From contig BQFW01000010.1 in NCBI GenBank assembly GCA_020891255.1, forward strand, positions 248,001 to 312,000: a DNA stretch of 64,000 bases. Direction: 5' to 3'. The position numbers and the translations under genes were made by a program. The notes beneath the pieces were generated by a model. That model was not told the DNA's origin and did not search any database. It saw only the letters and a list, made by a program, of their open reading frames with translations. Shown piece after piece: positions 25,435 through 37,201 of the stretch (position 1 is the first letter of the stretch; each line of letters starts with the position of its first letter). Origin of the DNA: Entomortierella parvispora E1425 (taxonomy: Eukaryota; Fungi; Mortierellomycota).

Positions 25435-28158
<2,724 letters not shown>

Positions 28159-28438
28159 TTCATAAGGGCAAAAAGGTTAGAACATGCATGAAAACGTAAT
28201 GGCAAGAGATGTGCATTGAAGCATTTCCAGCGTTTGGAACACGAACCTGCATCGTGCTTGGTTTAACGGAGGTGATTCCGTACGGAAGTTTAAGATCCTC
28301 GCCCATGCTGGCCGGTTGTTCCTGTTCTGATCGAATGAATGGTTGTTTGCATGCAGAGTGCTCTTGACCCCTTCTGGCTGTGCTCTGAAATTGGTCAATG
28401 ACAATCTACACCCTTAATTTATTCCCCTTACGCTCGAA

Positions 28439-29560
28439 ATGCGCGAGTGTCCCCTGTTTGCCCCAAAGATCCTTTTTCTTGTTGCTTTCCACCACGACCT
28501 CTCCAGTCTAGCAAACCCTTTCGAGAACCTACGCGAGAACGTTTCACTTTTCCCATATTTTGAGAATACGACTTGGGAGTACACGCGGGATTTCGAGTTC
28601 TTCCAGCAATCCCTTTAAAACAAACCCAAGGCCCTTGTATCAACGATCGAGCACCACCGACGATTTTCCTGCGCTTCCCTCGAGCTCAATGGCAGGATAC
28701 TCCACCCCAACATGATGACTGTCATGAAAGGTCCATAACCCTCCTCGTACTCTCCCTGGACGGTTCGCGGACTACCTCTTCCGCATCGAGGCCATCGAGA
28801 ACGTTGATGATGATCAGCAGACGGTGAACATGTGGAGGGAGAAAAACAAAAGGTTCAAAAAAAATATTCTAAACAAGAAGAGGGACCACAATACGAAATT
28901 GAGAAAGAGATTAAGGAGGAGAGTATCTTGGAAACATATGACTACAGGGGTAAAGACAGGATGGGAAGGACAACATCCGAAGATCTGAATTGAAGGTACT
29001 GGAAACTCCTAGTAGGCAGTTCCGCAATGGACGACTGTGGATATAATCTGATGGCATTAGGTACTACCATTGAAGGAACTCAAGGACAGACAAAGGCCAG
29101 CGAAGGGGGGCTTCAGCAGAACGGTGCTGTCAGGACTCCAATTTTACCCATGGGCTTGGATTCAATGATCAAAATGCCCTTGATGGTAAAGGCCGCCTCA
29201 AAGAGAACGGACAGGGATGCAGGCGCGAAAGGAAGAGACGGCGATGCAACAATGGGCTAAGGCCCAAGATCGAAGGAGGCAAAGCCAAAGACCAGCCTGG
29301 GCGCAATGATCCAAAAGATGCACCACCGGAGAGGAATTGGGGTCAAAGAAGAGAAACAAATACAGATGCGGGCCATCGCCCGTTGATACAAGCACAAGTT
29401 CATCCGCAGATAGATCGATTGCCTGCAGAGCAGGCGATCCACATCACAATGTCGCCAACGGCCATGTTCAACAGGCCTTGGAGTGGGGTTTGGGCTTTGT
29501 TCATTTCAGACTGGACCGTGCACAAGGAGACCAAAAAGAAAAAAAAGAAAGAAATCAGCG
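28439..29560 (+). pseudogene. Decayed coding-like remnant of unknown family crossing the left boundary of the inverted repeat
   Basis: ATG at 28439 is open for 59 codons, then TAA, more coding-like sequence and frameshifts (..YLFRIEAIENVDDD..). Family not recognised. Confidence 0.3.
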
Positions 29561-30178
29561 AAACAACAGCGGGCGGGCTCAAAATGGGCGAAGCACGTTT
29601 TCCCCTGGCGTTCTCGCGCATATGTTGCCCTCTTCTCGTCTTTCTCATGCCTCCGTCTCTCAATGCCTGGCCTGCATTCTCTGCATCTCTCCATTCCACC
29701 ATCCATTCTCCATCACCCCTCTCTCTCTCTCTCTCTCATCCAGGGACACCAGCCTCCATTCACTCCATCTCATTCCTTCATTCATTTGCTCAGTGCAGGC
29801 ATCTCTCGACTCATATGCCATTGGCGCGTTTGACAGCACTAATTCAGAGCAGACCACTTGCGTCCAAGAGGGCTGATATCCTTTACAATTGCCACCATGC
29901 CCACCGTTCAATTCAACGAGATCATTCACACACAAAGTCAACGTCAGTACGCGGGACAAAGGATCTGATGTTTGTTTTTATCATCTAAATTAGTCCATTA
30001 TTTTGTCAGAATTAAAGAGAGAAAACAAGAATTTTAATAGAGTGCTTTGAAAGGGAGTGCTATGGAAGGGAAGAGAGTACTTTGGAAGGGAGGAGAGTGC
30101 TGTGGAAGTGGAAAAGATAAGAAAAATGTAAGTTTCAAAGAAAAAAAATGGTTTGTGGAAGGGATAAAGTGAGTTGGC

Positions 30179-30340
30179 GTACCAAGTCCCCCGATGTTTG
30201 TTATAGATGCTGACGACTGCGTGCCATCACCACATCCCATCGGGATCATGGATTTGTGGAAGAAACAAAGAGCAGTACCAAGTCCCCGATGTTCGCTGAC
30301 GACTCTGAGCCATCACCTCATCACATCGGCATCATGGATC
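30179..30340. repeat. Degenerate two-copy tandem repeat (period ~96 bp) inside the arm, mirrored in the right arm
   Basis: gtaccaagtccc(c)cgatgtt...gctgacgact..gccatcacc..catcgg.atcatggat at 30179 and 30275. Confidence 0.85.
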
Positions 30341-30716
30341 ACCGCCCGACTATCCTAACTACACTAGGGCTAAACTAACTAGTCTAGAAGCGAAGGAAGG
30401 GGGACGGAAGAAAAGGAAGTTTTCTCTCTTGATTCTTGTTTCTTGAATTCTTGTTTCTTGTTTCTTGGATGGGGGGCTCAAGACCAAAGAGGGCAGGGAG
30501 GCAACTGCATTTGGGAGGCAGGCTATGATCAAGCCGAGGAGGCCAGGTGGTCTTGAGGGCCAAGGTCAAGTCCGAAGAGTCAGACAACCTTGAGGCCGAG
30601 GCTTGGGCCGGAGCGGGCAGGCGGGCAAGGGGGCTTGTGGCCGCGGCAGGTCTTGAGGGCCGAGGTCAAGCCATGAGAAGGCAGACAACTTTGAGGACGA
30701 GCCTTGAACTTGAAAA

Positions 30717-30883
30717 GGCAGGCAAGTTTGTGGCCAAAGACTTGAAAAGGGCAGGCAAGTTTGCGGCCAAAGACTTGAAAAGGGCAGGCAGGTTTGCGGC
30801 CAAAGACTTGGAAGGGCAGGCAGGTTTGCGGCCAGAGTCTTGGAAGGGCAGGCAGGTTTGCGGCCAGAGTCTTGGAAGGGCAG
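30717..30883. repeat. Minisatellite of five 32-33 bp units (ggcaggcargtttgyggccararwcttgraa(a)g), mirrored at ~31853-32019
   Basis: Units start at 30717, 30750, 30783, 30815 and 30847 (33, 33, 32, 32, 32 bp). Confidence 0.92.
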
Positions 30884-31402
30884 TAAAGGTGGGCCAGGAG
30901 ATCAAGACCATTGGGACCGGGGCCAAGGAGGGCAGGACCGAAGTTGAAAAGCCGATGTCGTTGGACCGGAGACATTTGTTGCTGGCCGAGGGGAGGATGG
31001 CAGCATGGTGGTACGTGCTTGGTGTGCTTAGTGTGCTTAGTGTGCTTTGTGTGTGTGGAAGGGGAGTGAGGAAGAAATGAAGGATGAGGAGCAAAAAAAA
31101 GAGGGGAACCATGGAGGGTATTTGTATGAAAGTGGATTCATCTCTCTGCTATCGCCTATCGACTGCGGTCTCAGATGTGCGATGCGATAGCGAGATAGCG
31201 ACATGGCGACATGAGGGAGGGATGACATTGATTGGTCTAAGGATAAGGTAACGGAGGAACGATGCTGTCGCAAAGGAAGGAAGGATGGCGATTGGCCTGT
31301 CGAAACATGTGAAAGAGGAGAAAAGCGAGCGAGCAGATGTTAACTTTTGGGTGTGGAGCGAAAATAAGAGAACTGACTGCGCGTGGACGCGAGATGAGAC
31401 GT

Positions 31403-31501
31403 GCCATTTTGCCATGGAGGATGAAAATAAGGGAAGTGGCCACGCGTGAACGGGCCATTTTTGCATGGAGGATGAAAATAAGGTGGCAGATGGCGACGCG
31501 T
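31403..31501. repeat. Two 30-bp direct repeats in the palindrome spacer, each followed by ACGCGT
   Basis: gccattttgccatggaggatgaaaataagg (31403) and gccatttttgcatggaggatgaaaataagg (31454); ACGCGT at 31442 and 31496. Confidence 0.85.
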
Positions 31502-31591
31502 TTTCGCTTTTTTTTTTAAAAATTTGGTGAAATTCTGAAAAACAATGATGGCTTGGCGGATGTAAACAAAACAACGGCCCATCCGAACAAT

Positions 31592-33973
31592 CCCACTTTC
31601 ATACTTTCATACAAATACCCTCCATGGTTCCCCTCTTTTTTTTGCTCCTCATCCTTCGTTTCTTCCTCACTCCCCTTCCACACACACAAAGCACACTAAG
31701 CACACTAAGCACACCAAGCACGTACCACCATGCTGCCATCCTCCCCTCGGCCAGCAACAAATGTCTCCGGTCCAACGACATCGGCTTTTCAACTTCGGTC
31801 CTGCCCTCCTTGGCCCCGGTCCCAATGGTCTTGATCTCCTGGCCCACCTTTACTGCCCTTCCAAGACTCTGGCCGCAAACCTGCCTGCCCTTCCAAGACT
31901 CTGGCCGCAAACCTGCCTGCCCTTCCAAGTCTTTGGCCGCAAACCTGCCTGCCCTTTTCAAGTCTTTGGCCGCAAACTTGCCTGCCCTTTTCAAGTCTTT
32001 GGCCACAAACTTGCCTGCCTTTTCAAGTTCAAGGCTCGTCCTCAAAGTTGTCTGCCTTCTCATGGCTTGACCTCGGCCCTCAAGACCTGCCGCGGCCACA
32101 AGCCCCCTTGCCCGCCTGCCCGCTCCGGCCCAAGCCTCGGCCTCAAGGTTGTCTGACTCTTCGGACTTGACCTTGGCCCTCAAGACCACCTGGCCTCCTC
32201 GGCTTGATCATAGCCTGCCTCCCAAATGCAGTTGCCTCCCTGCCCTCTTTGGTCTTGAGCCCCCATCCAAGAAACAAGAAACAAGAATTCAAGAAACAAG
32301 AATCAAGAGAGAAAACTTCCTTTTCTTCCGTCCCCCTTCCTTCGCTTCTAGACTAGTTAGTTTAGCCCTAGTGTAGTTAGGATAGTCGGGCGGTGATCCA
32401 TGATGCCGATGTGATGAGGTGATGGCTCAGAGTCGTCAGCGAACATCGGGGACTTGGTACTGCTCTTTGTTTCTTCCACAAATCCATGATCCCGATGGGA
32501 TGTGGTGATGGCACGCAGTCGTCAGCATCTATAACAAACATCGGGGGACTTGGTACGCCAACTCACTTTATCCCTTCCACAAACCATTTTTTTTCTTTGA
32601 AACTTACATTTTCTTATCTTTTCCACTTCCACAGCACTCTCCTCCCTTCCAAAGTACTCTCTTCCCTTCCATAGCACTCCCTTTCAAAGCACTCTATTAA
32701 AATTCTTGTTTTCTCTCTTTAATTCTGACAAAATAATGGACTAATTTAGATGATAAAAACAAACATCAGATCCTTTGTCCCGCGTACTGACGTTGACTTT
32801 GTGTGTGAATGATCTCGTTGAATTGAACGGTGGGCATGGTGGCAATTGTAAAGGATATCAGCCCTCTTGGACGCAAGTGGTCTGCTCTGAATTAGTGCTG
32901 TCAAACGCGCCAATGGCATATGAGTCGAGAGATGCCTGCACTGAGCAAATGAATGAAGGAATGAGATGGAGTGAATGGAGGCTGGTGTCCCTGGATGAGA
33001 GAGAGAGAGAGGGGTGATGGAGAATGGATGGTGGAATGGAGAGATGCAGAGAATGCAGGCCAGGCATTGAGAGACGGAGGCATGAGAAAGACGAGAAGAG
33101 GGCAACATATGCGCGAGAACGCCAGGGGAAAACGTGCTTCGCCCATTTTGAGCCCGCCCGCTGTTGTTTCGCTGATTTCTTTCTTTTTTTTCTTTTTGGT
33201 CTCCTTGTGCACGGTCCAGTCTGAAATGAACAAAGCCCAAACCCCACTCCAAGGCCTGTTGAACATGGCCGTTGGCGACATTGTGATGTGGATCGCCTGC
33301 TCTGCAGGCAATCGATCTATCTGCGGATGAACTTGTGCTTGTATCAACGGGCGATGGCCCGCATCTGTATTTGTTTCTCTTCTTTGACCCCAATTCCTCT
33401 CCGGTGGTGCATCTTTTGGATCATTGCGCCCAGGCTGGTCTTTGGCTTTGCCTCCTTCGATCTTGGGCCTTAGCCCATTGTTGCATCGCCGTCTCTTCCT
33501 TTCGCGCCTGCATCCCTGTCCGTTCTCTTTGAGGCGGCCTTTACCATCAAGGGCATTTTGATCATTGAATCCAAGCCCATGGGTAAAATTGGAGTCCTGA
33601 CAGCACCGTTCTGCTGAAGCCCCCCTTCGCTGGCCTTTGTCTGTCCTTGAGTTCCTTCAATGGTAGTACCTAATGCCATCAGATTATATCCACAGTCGTC
33701 CATTGCGGAACTGCCTACTAGGAGTTTCCAGTACCTTCAATTCAGATCTTCGGATGTTGTCCTTCCCATCCTGTCTTTATCCCTGTAGTCATATGTTTCC
33801 AAGATACTCTCCTCCTTAATCTCTTTCTCAATTTCGTATTGTGGTCCCTCTTCTTGTTTAGAATGATCTTCTTGGACGTTTTGTTTTTCTCCCTCCACAT
33901 GTTCACCGTCTGCTAATCATCATCAACGTTCTCGATGGCCTCGATGCGGAAGCGGTAACCCGCGAACCGTCCA
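31592..33973. repeat. Right arm of ~2.4 kb inverted repeat
   Basis: Near-identical to the left arm. Differences are scattered substitutions, homopolymer/(CT)n length changes and an 8-bp duplication at the inner end; mismatches increase in the outer ~150 bp. Confidence 0.97.
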
Positions 33974-34150
33974 AGGAGTATGAAGCTGGTGGACCCTTCG
34001 AGGGTCAACACGTGTGCGAGTGTGTCGAAGTCTGGACTAAAAATTTATTTTTTGCATTCTGTTTGGTTCGGGGACCATCCGAAAATAAGAAAATAATGAC
34101 CCAAAGCAGGCCTAAAAATTATAATATACGCTTGATTGTTGGTATAGATC

Positions 34151-34903
34151 TCAGTCTTGGGTGCGGTACCATAGTATCCTGTCCCAAGTCCTGTTGTCGT
34201 CAGATAAAGTTTTCTCCTTGGCAGCGCTCGCTCCTACATCGCCTCCGAAATAGCTAAGAACGATCTCCATAACTCGGGGCTCAGCCAGGCTGCCTCTTAG
34301 GGTCGCTACTTCTGGGATTTCCGCTAATGGCGGAAAGCTCACTTTCCACTCGCCTATGTTACGATAAGAATATATAGTTGTGTTGTAGAAAAAGGAACTT
34401 TTGGTCTTTGTCTCCTTCCAAGGAGCCGAATGGTCTTCACACTTGTCGATTGAATTCCTGTCTCGGCAGAGTCGACATCTCCGGATGGTCCAGCTCCAAT
34501 TGATCAATTCCCCAACGTGCTCGACCCCCGTCGCTGAGGAGATGGTGTGAAGCCTCTGAAGGACTGGCAACGGTAGGTGGGATCTGTTTGGCTCTTGGAA
34601 GTTTGAGAGTCGGAAACAGACCTCGCAGAGATGACGGCTTATAACGCAGATATACACCATATAACTCTTAAAGTGGGCTTGTCCTCGGAGAAGGCGAAGT
34701 GGTTTCATGTCCGGATGGGTGAACTCATAGATTTGTTTCCAGAAAGGTAAGGAGCCAATGATGAGGTGAAGGGTTCGGCTGACTCTGGAGAGGCGCGAGA
34801 GCTGGGAGGGATAGAGTCGCGCAAAGATCATTAGCCATATCTCGGGAGGGATTTGCTTATCGACACACTGCCTCTGTCGTTGACTGAAGTCGTCCGCGGA
34901 CAT
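34151..34903 (-). CDS. F-box + CxxC..CxxC protein, array-2 copy A (most divergent)
   Basis: Start MSADDFSQ. IPPEIWLMIFARLYPSQLSRLSRVS F-box; HLCEVC and WTIRRCRLCR; FGGDVG..AAK..TWDRILWY tail. Confidence 0.85.
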   Translation of the reverse strand: MSADDFSQRQRQCVDKQIPPEIWLMIFARLYPSQLSRLSRVSRTLHLIIGSLPFWKQIYEFTHPDMKPLRLLRGQAHFKSYMVYICVISRHLCEVCFRLSNFQEPNRSHLPLPVLQRLHTISSATGVEHVGELINWSWTIRRCRLCRDRNSIDKCEDHSAPWKETKTKSSFFYNTTIYSYRNIGEWKVSFPPLAEIPEVATLRGSLAEPRVMEIVLSYFGGDVGASAAKEKTLSDDNRTWDRILWYRTQD

Positions 34904-35246
34904 TCTCCTGTTGGTGAGTGAGGTCGAGATGCAGGGGGAAGGAGGGAGGGAGAAAGGGGCATGGGTTGTGGGAACAATTGATTGCCAAGCCTCCCGCACA
35001 TTCCCACCCATGTGACGTCGTTGTGACGCAAAGGAAAAATGGGATGTGTGCCGTTGAAAAATGGCGAAATGGCCTGGGTCGATCTGTGATCGTTTCATGG
35101 TCAGCAGGGAAGGGATGGAGGATCCAAAGCGGTCTTTTGGGCTCGTTCTCTTCACTCGTGTCTCTCTTTCTCTCTCTCTCTTTGTCTCTCTCTTTCTCTA
35201 CAACTCCCTCTTTTAGTCACAGACACACTCCCATCCATCCACAATC

Positions 35247-37201
<1,955 letters not shown>

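Follow-up and report, generated by a model that had tools for sequence, protein, structure and literature searches.

The human and primate Y/X-chromosome palindromes P1–P8 are large palindromes whose arms are kept alike through arm-to-arm gene conversion. Their kilobase arms flank a unique spacer and exceed 99.9% identity for the greater part of their length; in paralogous or older palindromes, the arms cluster according to locus, and differences gather at the arm boundary. These palindromes range in size from tens of kilobases up to megabases, harbour testis genes, and for the most part each form a single locus. A second described system is that of the FB-type foldback elements (i.e., Drosophila FB, Galileo, and plant FARE/SoFT), present in many copies, in which long inverted arms partly composed of tandem sub-repeats surround a short non-coding middle, and which have conserved outer termini, target-site duplications and an internal variable part. 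Finally, the centromeres of Komagataella phaffii (PMC5010909) and Candida tropicalis (PMC7292649) consist of ~2-kb inverted repeats around a short central core, with recombination between the repeats; there is one per chromosome, to which CenH3 binds. In K. phaffii, each chromosome has exactly one such inverted-repeat centromere, and these are mutually unrelated in sequence (PMC5010909).

The locus described here is a palindrome of 5.2 kb within a window of 64,000 nucleotides from Entomortierella parvispora E1425 (contig BQFW01000010.1, hereafter C10). It shares the above-mentioned arm identity, unique spacer, grouping by locus and boundary-bound differences with P1–P8, but its arms are only 2.4 kb long, hold no coding gene, include a small conserved core and belong to a dispersed family of 17 loci. 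Like the FB-type elements, it exists in many copies, and its long arms contain tandem sub-repeats and enclose a short non-coding middle, whereas its family displays a conserved centre and internal core, variable outer ends, co-travelling flanks and no duplication of the target site. The likeness to the yeast centromeres lies in the inverted repeats, the short core and the recombination between the repeats, while the family has many loci on one contig and is absent from most others. The main parts of the window palindrome are as follows:

28752–31133, plus strand: left arm, 2382 bp
31134–31602, no strand: asymmetric spacer, 469 bp by strict identity
31603–33978, minus strand: right arm, 2376 bp
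28710–28950, no strand: eroding outer edge of the left arm, with 11 of the 12 substitutions and then ~70% identity out to 28710 (mirror 33780–34013)
30708–30883, no strand: tandem array of 32–33 bp in 5.4 copies (mirror 31853–32028)

Repeat searching and alignment of one arm to the reverse complement of the other (BLAST and MAFFT) yielded an arm-to-arm identity of 99.2%, which bears out the ~5.2-kb quasi-palindrome with near-identical inverted arms of ~2.4 kb proposed in a first-pass annotation of the same DNA. The ~455 bp given there for the spacer was a fair estimate, since the spacer shortens to ~450 bp (31140–31589) once an 8-bp TTCATACT duplication is permitted. The few substitutions and short-repeat length changes that it had seen between the arms amounted to 12 substitutions (three of which adjoin another, with BLAST tallying 11 mismatched columns) and three indels in short repeats (one of CTCT at 29719, the other two in an A-run at 30122 and in a G-run at 30471), and T31078 was indeed aligned opposite G31658. 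Moreover, mismatches had been noted to mount towards the outer edge and fade into the flanks; the outer 200 bp (28756–28950) in fact carried 11 of the 12 substitutions (binomial P = 1.6e-11 under uniform spread), leaving a single one in the inner 2.18 kb, and weak homology between the arms (72%) ran outward to ~28710/34013, where it ended. Each arm further contained tandem sub-repeat arrays of 20, 7/15, 32–33, and 9 bp.

A genome-wide search for other copies, suggested in the first-pass annotation, revealed dispersed copies at 17 loci, with 27 arm cores in total. The family comprised 10 palindromic and six single-arm loci, plus fragments, on three contigs: at least 14 loci on C1 (all within 650 kb, C1:150–800 kb), three on C10 and one on C6, with none found elsewhere. 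Distant kinship of the 30708–30883 array and the inner arm was additionally detected with other palindromes on C5, C6, and C7. This multi-copy nature had been overlooked in the first-pass annotation. The part of the arm common to other loci, the part specific to the window locus and the flanking genes were delineated as follows:

29457–31133, plus strand: family arm common to other loci, its outer and inner parts differing in conservation
28725–29456, plus strand: outer module X, with a counterpart in the right arm (mirror 33274–34005) and absent from all other family loci
28514–28732, plus strand: F-box/LRR gene fragment in the left flank (interrupted by an in-frame stop and corresponding to residues 163–236 of a paralogue of 391 aa)
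34151–35155, minus strand: first F-box gene of the neighbouring array in the right flank, its 3′ end ~140 bp from the arm

Between loci, the outer part of the family arm (29457–29998) was 65–81% alike and the inner part (29998–31133) ~85–97%. All palindromic loci had their inner junctions in common, along with a homologous spacer (the one in the window having homologues at nine other loci, with two spacer subtypes in the family), indicating that the palindrome arose only once. Every single-arm copy ended at the junction between spacer and right arm.

Because module X is present in both of its arms, the window locus has arms longer than those of any other family member. The only other relative of this module was a 67% DNA paralogue at C13:2465425–2466102, where a search with two forward-frame ORFs of the module gave no protein-level match, and it had no homology to the segment that replaces it at the family copy near C1:298 kb. 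The F-box/LRR fragment in the left flank broke off exactly at the start of the palindrome and did not resume on its right side; at the C1:298 kb copy, an intact F-box/LRR gene was present.

In a maximum-likelihood tree of the arms from nine palindromic loci, arms grouped by locus and not by side: partner arms were sisters at seven of the nine loci (99–100% support), on a star-like backbone. Since partner arms are sisters despite the single origin of the palindrome, arm-to-arm gene conversion within each locus is indicated by these comparisons, as the first-pass annotation had surmised from the window alone; the homologous palindromes elsewhere have the same junctions and spacer, yet their arms group by locus. 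That the arms keep overwriting each other likewise accounts for partner arms being 93–100% alike, compared to ~85–93% for arms of different loci. In older family members, arm differences lay at both ends, around a conserved core, and the window locus was the most homogenised of all. Near-identical arms around a unique spacer, grouping by locus and divergence confined to the boundary, by which gene-converting palindromes are recognised, were all found here.

The best explanation, to which we assign a probability of roughly 0.65 as a whole, is that the window palindrome belongs to an old, low-copy, non-coding family, within which it is either young or was recently homogenised, and that the unit ancestral to this family already had palindromic form (i.e., arm, ~0.45-kb spacer, and inverted arm). 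The palindrome arose a single time, the arms at each locus are copied onto each other, and copies have flanking modules in common; the family probably multiplied mainly through segmental duplication. At the window locus, conversion extends over the arms except for their outer ~240 bp; there, differences accumulate and the boundary erodes. This palindrome adjoins the truncated F-box/LRR pseudogene and has gained the locus-specific module X in both arms. Nevertheless, the star-like tree would also suit a burst of transposition by some mechanism, and the presence of module X in both arms fits less easily; its outer 200 bp are 7% diverged, more than the 3% that separates the window locus from its closest relative, where X is missing.

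No Pfam domain was found in nine ORFs of the arms, spacer and edges, in line with the earlier statement that no intact gene is evident. However, that statement had overlooked one CDS in the NCBI annotation:

31761–32156, plus strand: orphan CDS of 131 aa (mirror ORF at 30580–30975, minus strand)

This CDS passes through the 32/33-bp repeat in three frames, one after the other, and yielded no relatives by exact look-up or homologue search; it is probably spurious and not a real protein. A signal-peptide-like ORF did not keep its ATG across family copies. Protein coding in the arms was consequently rejected, given the lack of Pfam domains, the orphan status of the annotated ORF, and the frame shifts in the repeat.

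The most conserved part of the arms was a ~280-bp core, situated as follows:

30150–30430, minus strand: core of the left arm, two tandem units of ~90–100 nt, each a hairpin
32305–32585, plus strand: core of the right arm, with a T8 run at 32587–32594 on the plus (outward) strand

In the left arm, the core is likewise followed by T8 on the outward (minus) strand, at 30141–30148. The core was 92–100% identical across all 27 copies, compared to ~85–93% for the rest of the arm (π of 0.033 vs. 0.112, i.e., about one quarter of the substitutions), and this difference persisted in the most decayed copy (C1:799496; 2.2% vs. 18.8%). We infer that the core is under constraint, although gene conversion between loci or a local mutational cold spot could also keep the copies alike. 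As a best guess, the core is either a protein-binding element or a small non-coding RNA, read away from the centre as far as the T8 run. On that guess, the palindrome would be a mirrored pair of these units, each proof-reading the other through conversion.

The core may be an undescribed RNA gene. In its fuller form, this possible but tentative reading takes the two halves of the palindrome as mirrored genes for a so far undescribed small RNA of ~280 nt, non-coding and transcribed outward to T8, with RNA polymerase III as a possible enzyme; on this view, the repeats would constitute a multigene family in which the palindrome keeps two copies identical, an equally tentative extension that overlaps the best explanation. 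Apart from the conservation of the core, this would be consistent with the T-run directly after it on the outward strand, kept in 22 of 22 aligned copies, and with the consensus fold, which was more stable on the outward strand (–67.6 kcal/mol, with 11 wobble-compatible changes that keep a pair and seven changes that break one) than on the opposite strand (–54.8 kcal/mol, with six kept and 17 broken). On the other hand, compensatory base changes were absent among the aligned copies, the z-score of the single-sequence fold was only –1.4, and no Rfam family was matched, all of which also weighs on the core part of the best explanation. Specifically, Rfam 15 gave no match at E ≤ 1 over window positions 27000–36000, and at E ≤ 10 one chance match only (E = 1.1; 16.7 bits vs. 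a gathering score of 80). Inspection by eye disclosed no TATA box, A/B box or E-box upstream of the core, and no consistent set of C/D or H/ACA snoRNA boxes on either of its strands. Moreover, the truncated fragment C1:568908–569168 still holds the core at 97%, which is unexpected under selection on an expressed gene. A tRNA search of the window palindrome found none, and a tRNA, SINE or known RNA was rejected on this search and that of Rfam. A metagenome scan with the core motif returned zero matches, in data where this fungus may be unrepresented. We give low weight to the core being a plus-strand intron: its splice-like signals (GTAAGT at 30128 and CTAAC..TAG at 30355–30387) are conserved, but the plus strand folds poorly (z = +1.1) and the would-be exons are indel-ridden repeats.

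Read-through of the palindrome could also produce a 2.4-kb dsRNA, from which Dicer would generate siRNAs silencing roughly 25 other family arms. Near-perfect 2.4-kb arms around a short loop make such a hairpin-RNA locus structurally possible, the 3′ end of the neighbouring F-box gene faces the right arm from ~140 bp away, and in Mucor, a related fungus, repeats are subject to silencing by RNAi (bioRxiv 10.1101/706580). The T8 runs in the arms would terminate transcription by polymerase III while leaving polymerase II unaffected, and are therefore neutral in this respect. We nevertheless consider a hairpin-RNA role unlikely: outside the family, no gene in the genome matched the arms (the sole extra match being the 67% non-coding paralogue of X), so arms derived from a target gene were not found, and the conserved core is left without account. 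It is conceivable, albeit doubtful, that either the core represents an undescribed, lineage-specific family of small-RNA genes (27 copies, read outward to T8, with pairing serving as proof-reading by conversion) or the palindromes give rise to hairpin RNAs by which their own family is kept in check via RNAi.

As to how the family spread, the first-pass annotation had considered a non-autonomous foldback element, which would depend for its movement on a transposase supplied in trans from another locus. The dispersed copies that this calls for do exist, their tree is star-like, and palindromes of distant kinship occur on C5, C6, and C7; the arms are long, inverted and rich in tandem sub-repeats (20, 7, 32–33, and 9 bp), and the centre is short and non-coding. 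However, the outer ends of seven palindromes compared lay at non-homologous family positions without a terminal motif, and no direct repeat was present at any pair of ends examined. No family copy contained a transposase or any coding centre, so that the earlier report of neither transposase nor clear target-site duplication holds for the window palindrome and its relatives alike. The youngest relative (C10:360884–364652; 97%) has asymmetric ends, at window positions 29503 and 29388, the conserved part of the arms is internal instead of terminal, and the single-arm copies all stop at one and the same junction. Furthermore, kilobases of flank, including modules Y and Z, are common to copies: those at C1:183 kb and C1:305 kb have 2.5 kb in common at 89% identity, and those at C10:603 kb and C1:801 kb have 1.5 kb at 93%. 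Of the features that mark foldback elements, only the sub-repeat arms were encountered, and not the conserved termini, target-site duplications, unrelated flanks or autonomous relative, making this a quite improbable reading. Shared flanks, variable outer ends, the lack of target-site duplications and the asymmetric youngest copy together point to segmental duplication rather than cut-and-paste transposition as the main way in which the family multiplied, in F-box/NLR-rich, rearrangement-prone regions of three contigs. RIP-like mutation was considered separately and rejected (transition/transversion ratio of 1.5, no CpA bias).

An assembly or fold-back read artefact deserves mention since the E1425 assembly was built from Nanopore reads (PMC8759367), which can hold fold-back chimeras. 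It is highly improbable and can be set aside because the asymmetric 469-bp spacer is homologous to those of nine other loci and the arms differ by 12 substitutions and three indels in a non-random pattern; moreover, older palindromic relatives have the same junctions with arms 89–99% alike. An inverted-repeat centromere of the Komagataella or Candida tropicalis type, also put forward in the first-pass annotation, resembles the locus in shape (~2-kb inverted repeats around a short core; PMC5010909) but has a next to negligible probability, because the 17 related loci are not spread one per chromosome (at least 14 on C1, three on C10, and none on most contigs), while the GC content is ordinary and genes lie 140–600 bp from the palindrome in a gene-to-gene gap of only ~5.9 kb.

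For a fungal group whose centromeres are unknown, a tempting centromere reading is thereby removed, and for the genome annotation, the 131-aa CDS can be marked as a probable tandem-repeat artefact. In addition, a small, apparently constrained and unannotated element is flagged in 27 copies. Ten homologous palindromes of one shared origin provide a clean internal control for concerted evolution, and the comparisons made with them indicate that, in a Mortierella-type fungus, palindromes of kilobase size evolve in concert, like the palindromes of animal sex chromosomes.

The inverted repeat reported by the first-pass annotation was recovered at this locus, as the four collinear inverted segments returned by a repeat search combine into two arms at 28752-31133 and 31603-33978, and BLAST comparison of an arm with the reverse complement of its partner gave 99.2% identity over 2383 columns. 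The spacer measures 469 bp under strict identity (or ~450 bp if 6-7 extra arm bases are admitted across an 8-bp duplication), and its segment 31399-31483 contains two 34-nt direct repeats (ACGTGCCATTTTGCCATGGAGGATGAAAATAAGG) spaced 51 bp. Global alignment of the arms revealed 12 substitutions, among which the previously noted T31078 opposite G31658, and three short-repeat length changes. The mismatches had been described as rising towards the outer edge, and 11 of the 12 substitutions were indeed located within 28756-28950 (P = 1.6e-11 if uniformly spread), with a single substitution separating the two arms across the inner 2.18 kb. Past 28752/33978, an arm likeness of ~70% persists to roughly 28710/34013. 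Because the substitutions cluster at the outer edge and are followed by this ~70% zone, identity drops stepwise in the outward direction, i.e., from 99.95% to 93% to ~70% to none.

Features of the palindrome and its left flank (window positions)
28514-28732, plus strand: F-box/LRR gene fragment in the left flank, 58% identical at the amino acid level to a 391-aa paralogue (residues 163-236)
28725-29456, mirrored at 33274-34005: module X, an outer segment of both arms, at this locus only
29719: CTCT length change between the arms (global alignment)
30122: A-run length change between the arms (global alignment)
30471: G-run length change between the arms (global alignment)
30150-30430, mirrored at 32305-32585: conserved core within each arm
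31761-32156, plus strand, mirrored at 30580-30975, minus strand: orphan 131-aa CDS of the NCBI annotation, present in NCBI/UniRef

The genome-wide search for copies that the first-pass annotation had proposed was carried out with the arm plus spacer over 38.9 Mb on 20 contigs, and found dispersed copies (73 matches) on the E1425 contigs, which were subsequently chained into four classes of loci.

Loci of the repeat family, and three further palindromes (C, contig)
Palindromic loci (n = 10): this locus; C10:360884-364652; C6:287.4 kb; C1:153.9, 222.1, 299.1, 383.2, 479.1, 497.0 and 658.6 kb
Single-arm loci, left arm kept (n = 6): C10:601.8 kb; C1:611.4, 672.6, 799.5, 187.6 and 245.6 kb
Core-bearing fragment (n = 1): C1:568.9 kb
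Fragments without core (n = 2): C1:381.4 and 409.8 kb
Three further near-perfect palindromes: C6:770755-773990; C7:2119256-2121999+; C5:1103410-1105999+

No other family locus has arms as long as those here. At all palindromic loci the inner arm ends are identical (window 31133 and 31603) and the spacers are homologous, falling into two subtypes; the 34-nt direct repeats are kept in the type-A spacers elsewhere in the family, whereas a deletion has removed them from type B. The single-arm loci comprise the whole spacer in four of six cases and just its first ~100 bp in two, and four of them end at most ~30 bp from the expected start of the right arm. Together, these common inner arm ends, homologous spacers and single-arm stops indicate that the palindrome arose once and was then copied. 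The inner arm at 30531-31227 (junction included) is the sole part common to the three further palindromes (61-64%), whose arms of 1.1-1.3 kb are 91-99.9% alike and surround spacers of 160-560 bp, and of which those on C6 and C5 are 86% alike. The family and these three palindromes seem to belong to a deeper superfamily whose members have their centre in common.

Given a single origin, plain divergence would be expected to bring the left arms of different loci together against the right arms. No such grouping was found. Instead, a maximum-likelihood tree placed partner arms as sisters in 7/9 testable palindromic loci (bootstrap 99-100%, on a star-like backbone), and partner arms were 93-100% identical versus ~85-93% for arms across loci. 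This locus-wise grouping supports the idea that the family arms evolve in concert through arm-to-arm gene conversion, and provides a firmer footing for that earlier proposal than the divergence gradient alone. Moreover, the likeness between this locus and C10:360 kb is 97%, yet only one inner-arm substitution is found here, so homogenisation has gone on after the last duplication. In older family members, the arm differences flank the conserved core on both sides and follow no simple outward gradient.

The outer ends of the inverted repeats lie at different, non-homologous family positions at every locus, and neither a terminal motif nor a target-site duplication is present at them; the youngest relative (C10:360884-364652), for example, ends asymmetrically, at window positions 29503 and 29388. 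Flanking sequence, moreover, is common to different family copies. Module Z (~1.6 kb) forms the outward continuation of the arm at 10 loci, beyond which C1:183-186 kb and C1:305-307.5 kb have another 2.5 kb in common (89%), while C10:603.5 kb and C1:801.2 kb have 1.5 kb in common (93%), and a piece of F-box/LRR gene is situated on the same side at this locus and at C1:298 kb. A coding centre is absent from every family copy, the arm ORFs matched no Pfam families, and no RIP-like mutation bias was found. This pattern is not that of a classical transposon but that of segmental duplication and rearrangement, within a compartment where F-box, LRR, NACHT and HEAT-repeat genes abound.

A second module (Y) is poly(A)-ended, adjoins the arm at 6 loci and is found outside the family as well; it is a dispersed repeat, located at C1:152806-153750 and ~18 other places. 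Its 27-nt poly(A) tract lies directly at the family arm (junction ...A27 CAG / AAATGAA), and module Y resembles a retroposon 3′ end, as if a retroposon had inserted into an ancestral copy and then been co-duplicated. At C1:222122, a family palindrome cuts off a NACHT-type P-loop gene (C1:221447-222172), paralogues of which occur at C1:240.7, 472 and 491 kb and at C6:282 kb. The first 800 kb of C1 are dense in NACHT/HEAT genes, F-box/LRR genes and family repeats.

The window, C10:248001-312000, has an ordinary GC content (~50%). To the left of the palindrome lies an intron-containing minus-strand gene (26.5-28.16 kb, start near 28158), which we take, from its first exons as judged by eye, to resemble a U2-snRNP-associated SURP-motif protein, and to the right an 11-copy F-box array, the first gene of which ends at 34151, ~140 bp off the arm. 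The F-box/LRR fragment in the left flank (intact paralogue at C1:297709-298881) carries an in-frame stop and is truncated at the exact edge of the arm. Since no continuation of this gene was found beyond the opposite side, the palindrome is not a simple insertion. Module X, which is missing at all other family loci, begins on the left exactly at the end of the F-box/LRR fragment, and its eroded right copy extends to the same end. Its outer 200 bp are 7% diverged, versus 3% between this locus and its X-less relative. The only relative of X is a 67% DNA match on C13 (C13:2465425-2466102), and a search with two forward-frame ORFs gave no protein-level match. The annotated 131-aa protein has zero homologues among 5.8 billion proteins, and its CDS is probably a spurious annotation artefact, because it translates a 32/33-bp tandem repeat in three frames, one after the other.

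With regard to the roles suggested by the first-pass annotation, a hairpin/siRNA locus is possible in principle from the structure; the neighbouring F-box gene is directed into the right arm, and RNAi acts to silence repeats in Mucor (bioRxiv 10.1101/706580). The likeness to foldback transposons is one of shape, which fits, whereas the defining ends and target-site duplications of such elements do not. A centromere-like structure was rejected, since K. phaffii-type centromeres are mutually unrelated and single per chromosome (PMC5010909), in contrast to the many related loci on one contig here (at least 14 in 650 kb of C1, three on C10 and none on most contigs). An assembly artefact was rejected as well, given that the asymmetric spacer has homologues at other loci, the differences between the arms are patterned and older relatives exist. 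The locus is a genuine and well-behaved gene-converting palindrome, a member of a non-coding duplicon family.

The core was retrieved in 27 copies at 17 loci, with 92-100% identity across 27/27 copies. Its nucleotide diversity is 0.033 versus 0.112 elsewhere in the inner arm, departures from consensus are fourfold rarer in it, and the most decayed copy (C1:799496) has diverged by 2.2% within the core versus 18.8% outside. It consists of two tandem units of ~90-100 nt, in each of which an imperfect ~20-bp hairpin is possible. On the outward strand (i.e., reading away from the spacer), a T8 directly follows the core (30141-30148; mirror 32587-32594), and a T-run of at least 5 occurs in 22/22 aligned copies. 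The consensus fold reached -67.6 kcal/mol on the outward strand versus -54.8 on the opposite one, and variable stem positions kept pairing in 11 cases and broke it in 7 on the former, versus 6 kept and 17 broken on the latter.

From sequence, the core might be an undescribed small RNA or protein-binding element, a tentative reading to which we assign roughly one chance in three. However, an RNA gene is disfavoured by the lack of compensatory change, a single-sequence fold z-score of only -1.4, the absence of an Rfam family match or visible promoter motif, and the truncated fragment retaining the core equally well. Alternatively, conversion between loci, or a cold spot of mutation, could account for the likeness among cores. 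The core might also, with low probability, be an intron on the opposite strand, for which it is a candidate because conserved GTAAGT and CTAAC..TAG signals bracket it there, although it folds poorly on that strand. Be it a small RNA, a protein-binding element or otherwise, this constrained ~280-bp core is the sole part of the locus that could be new biology.
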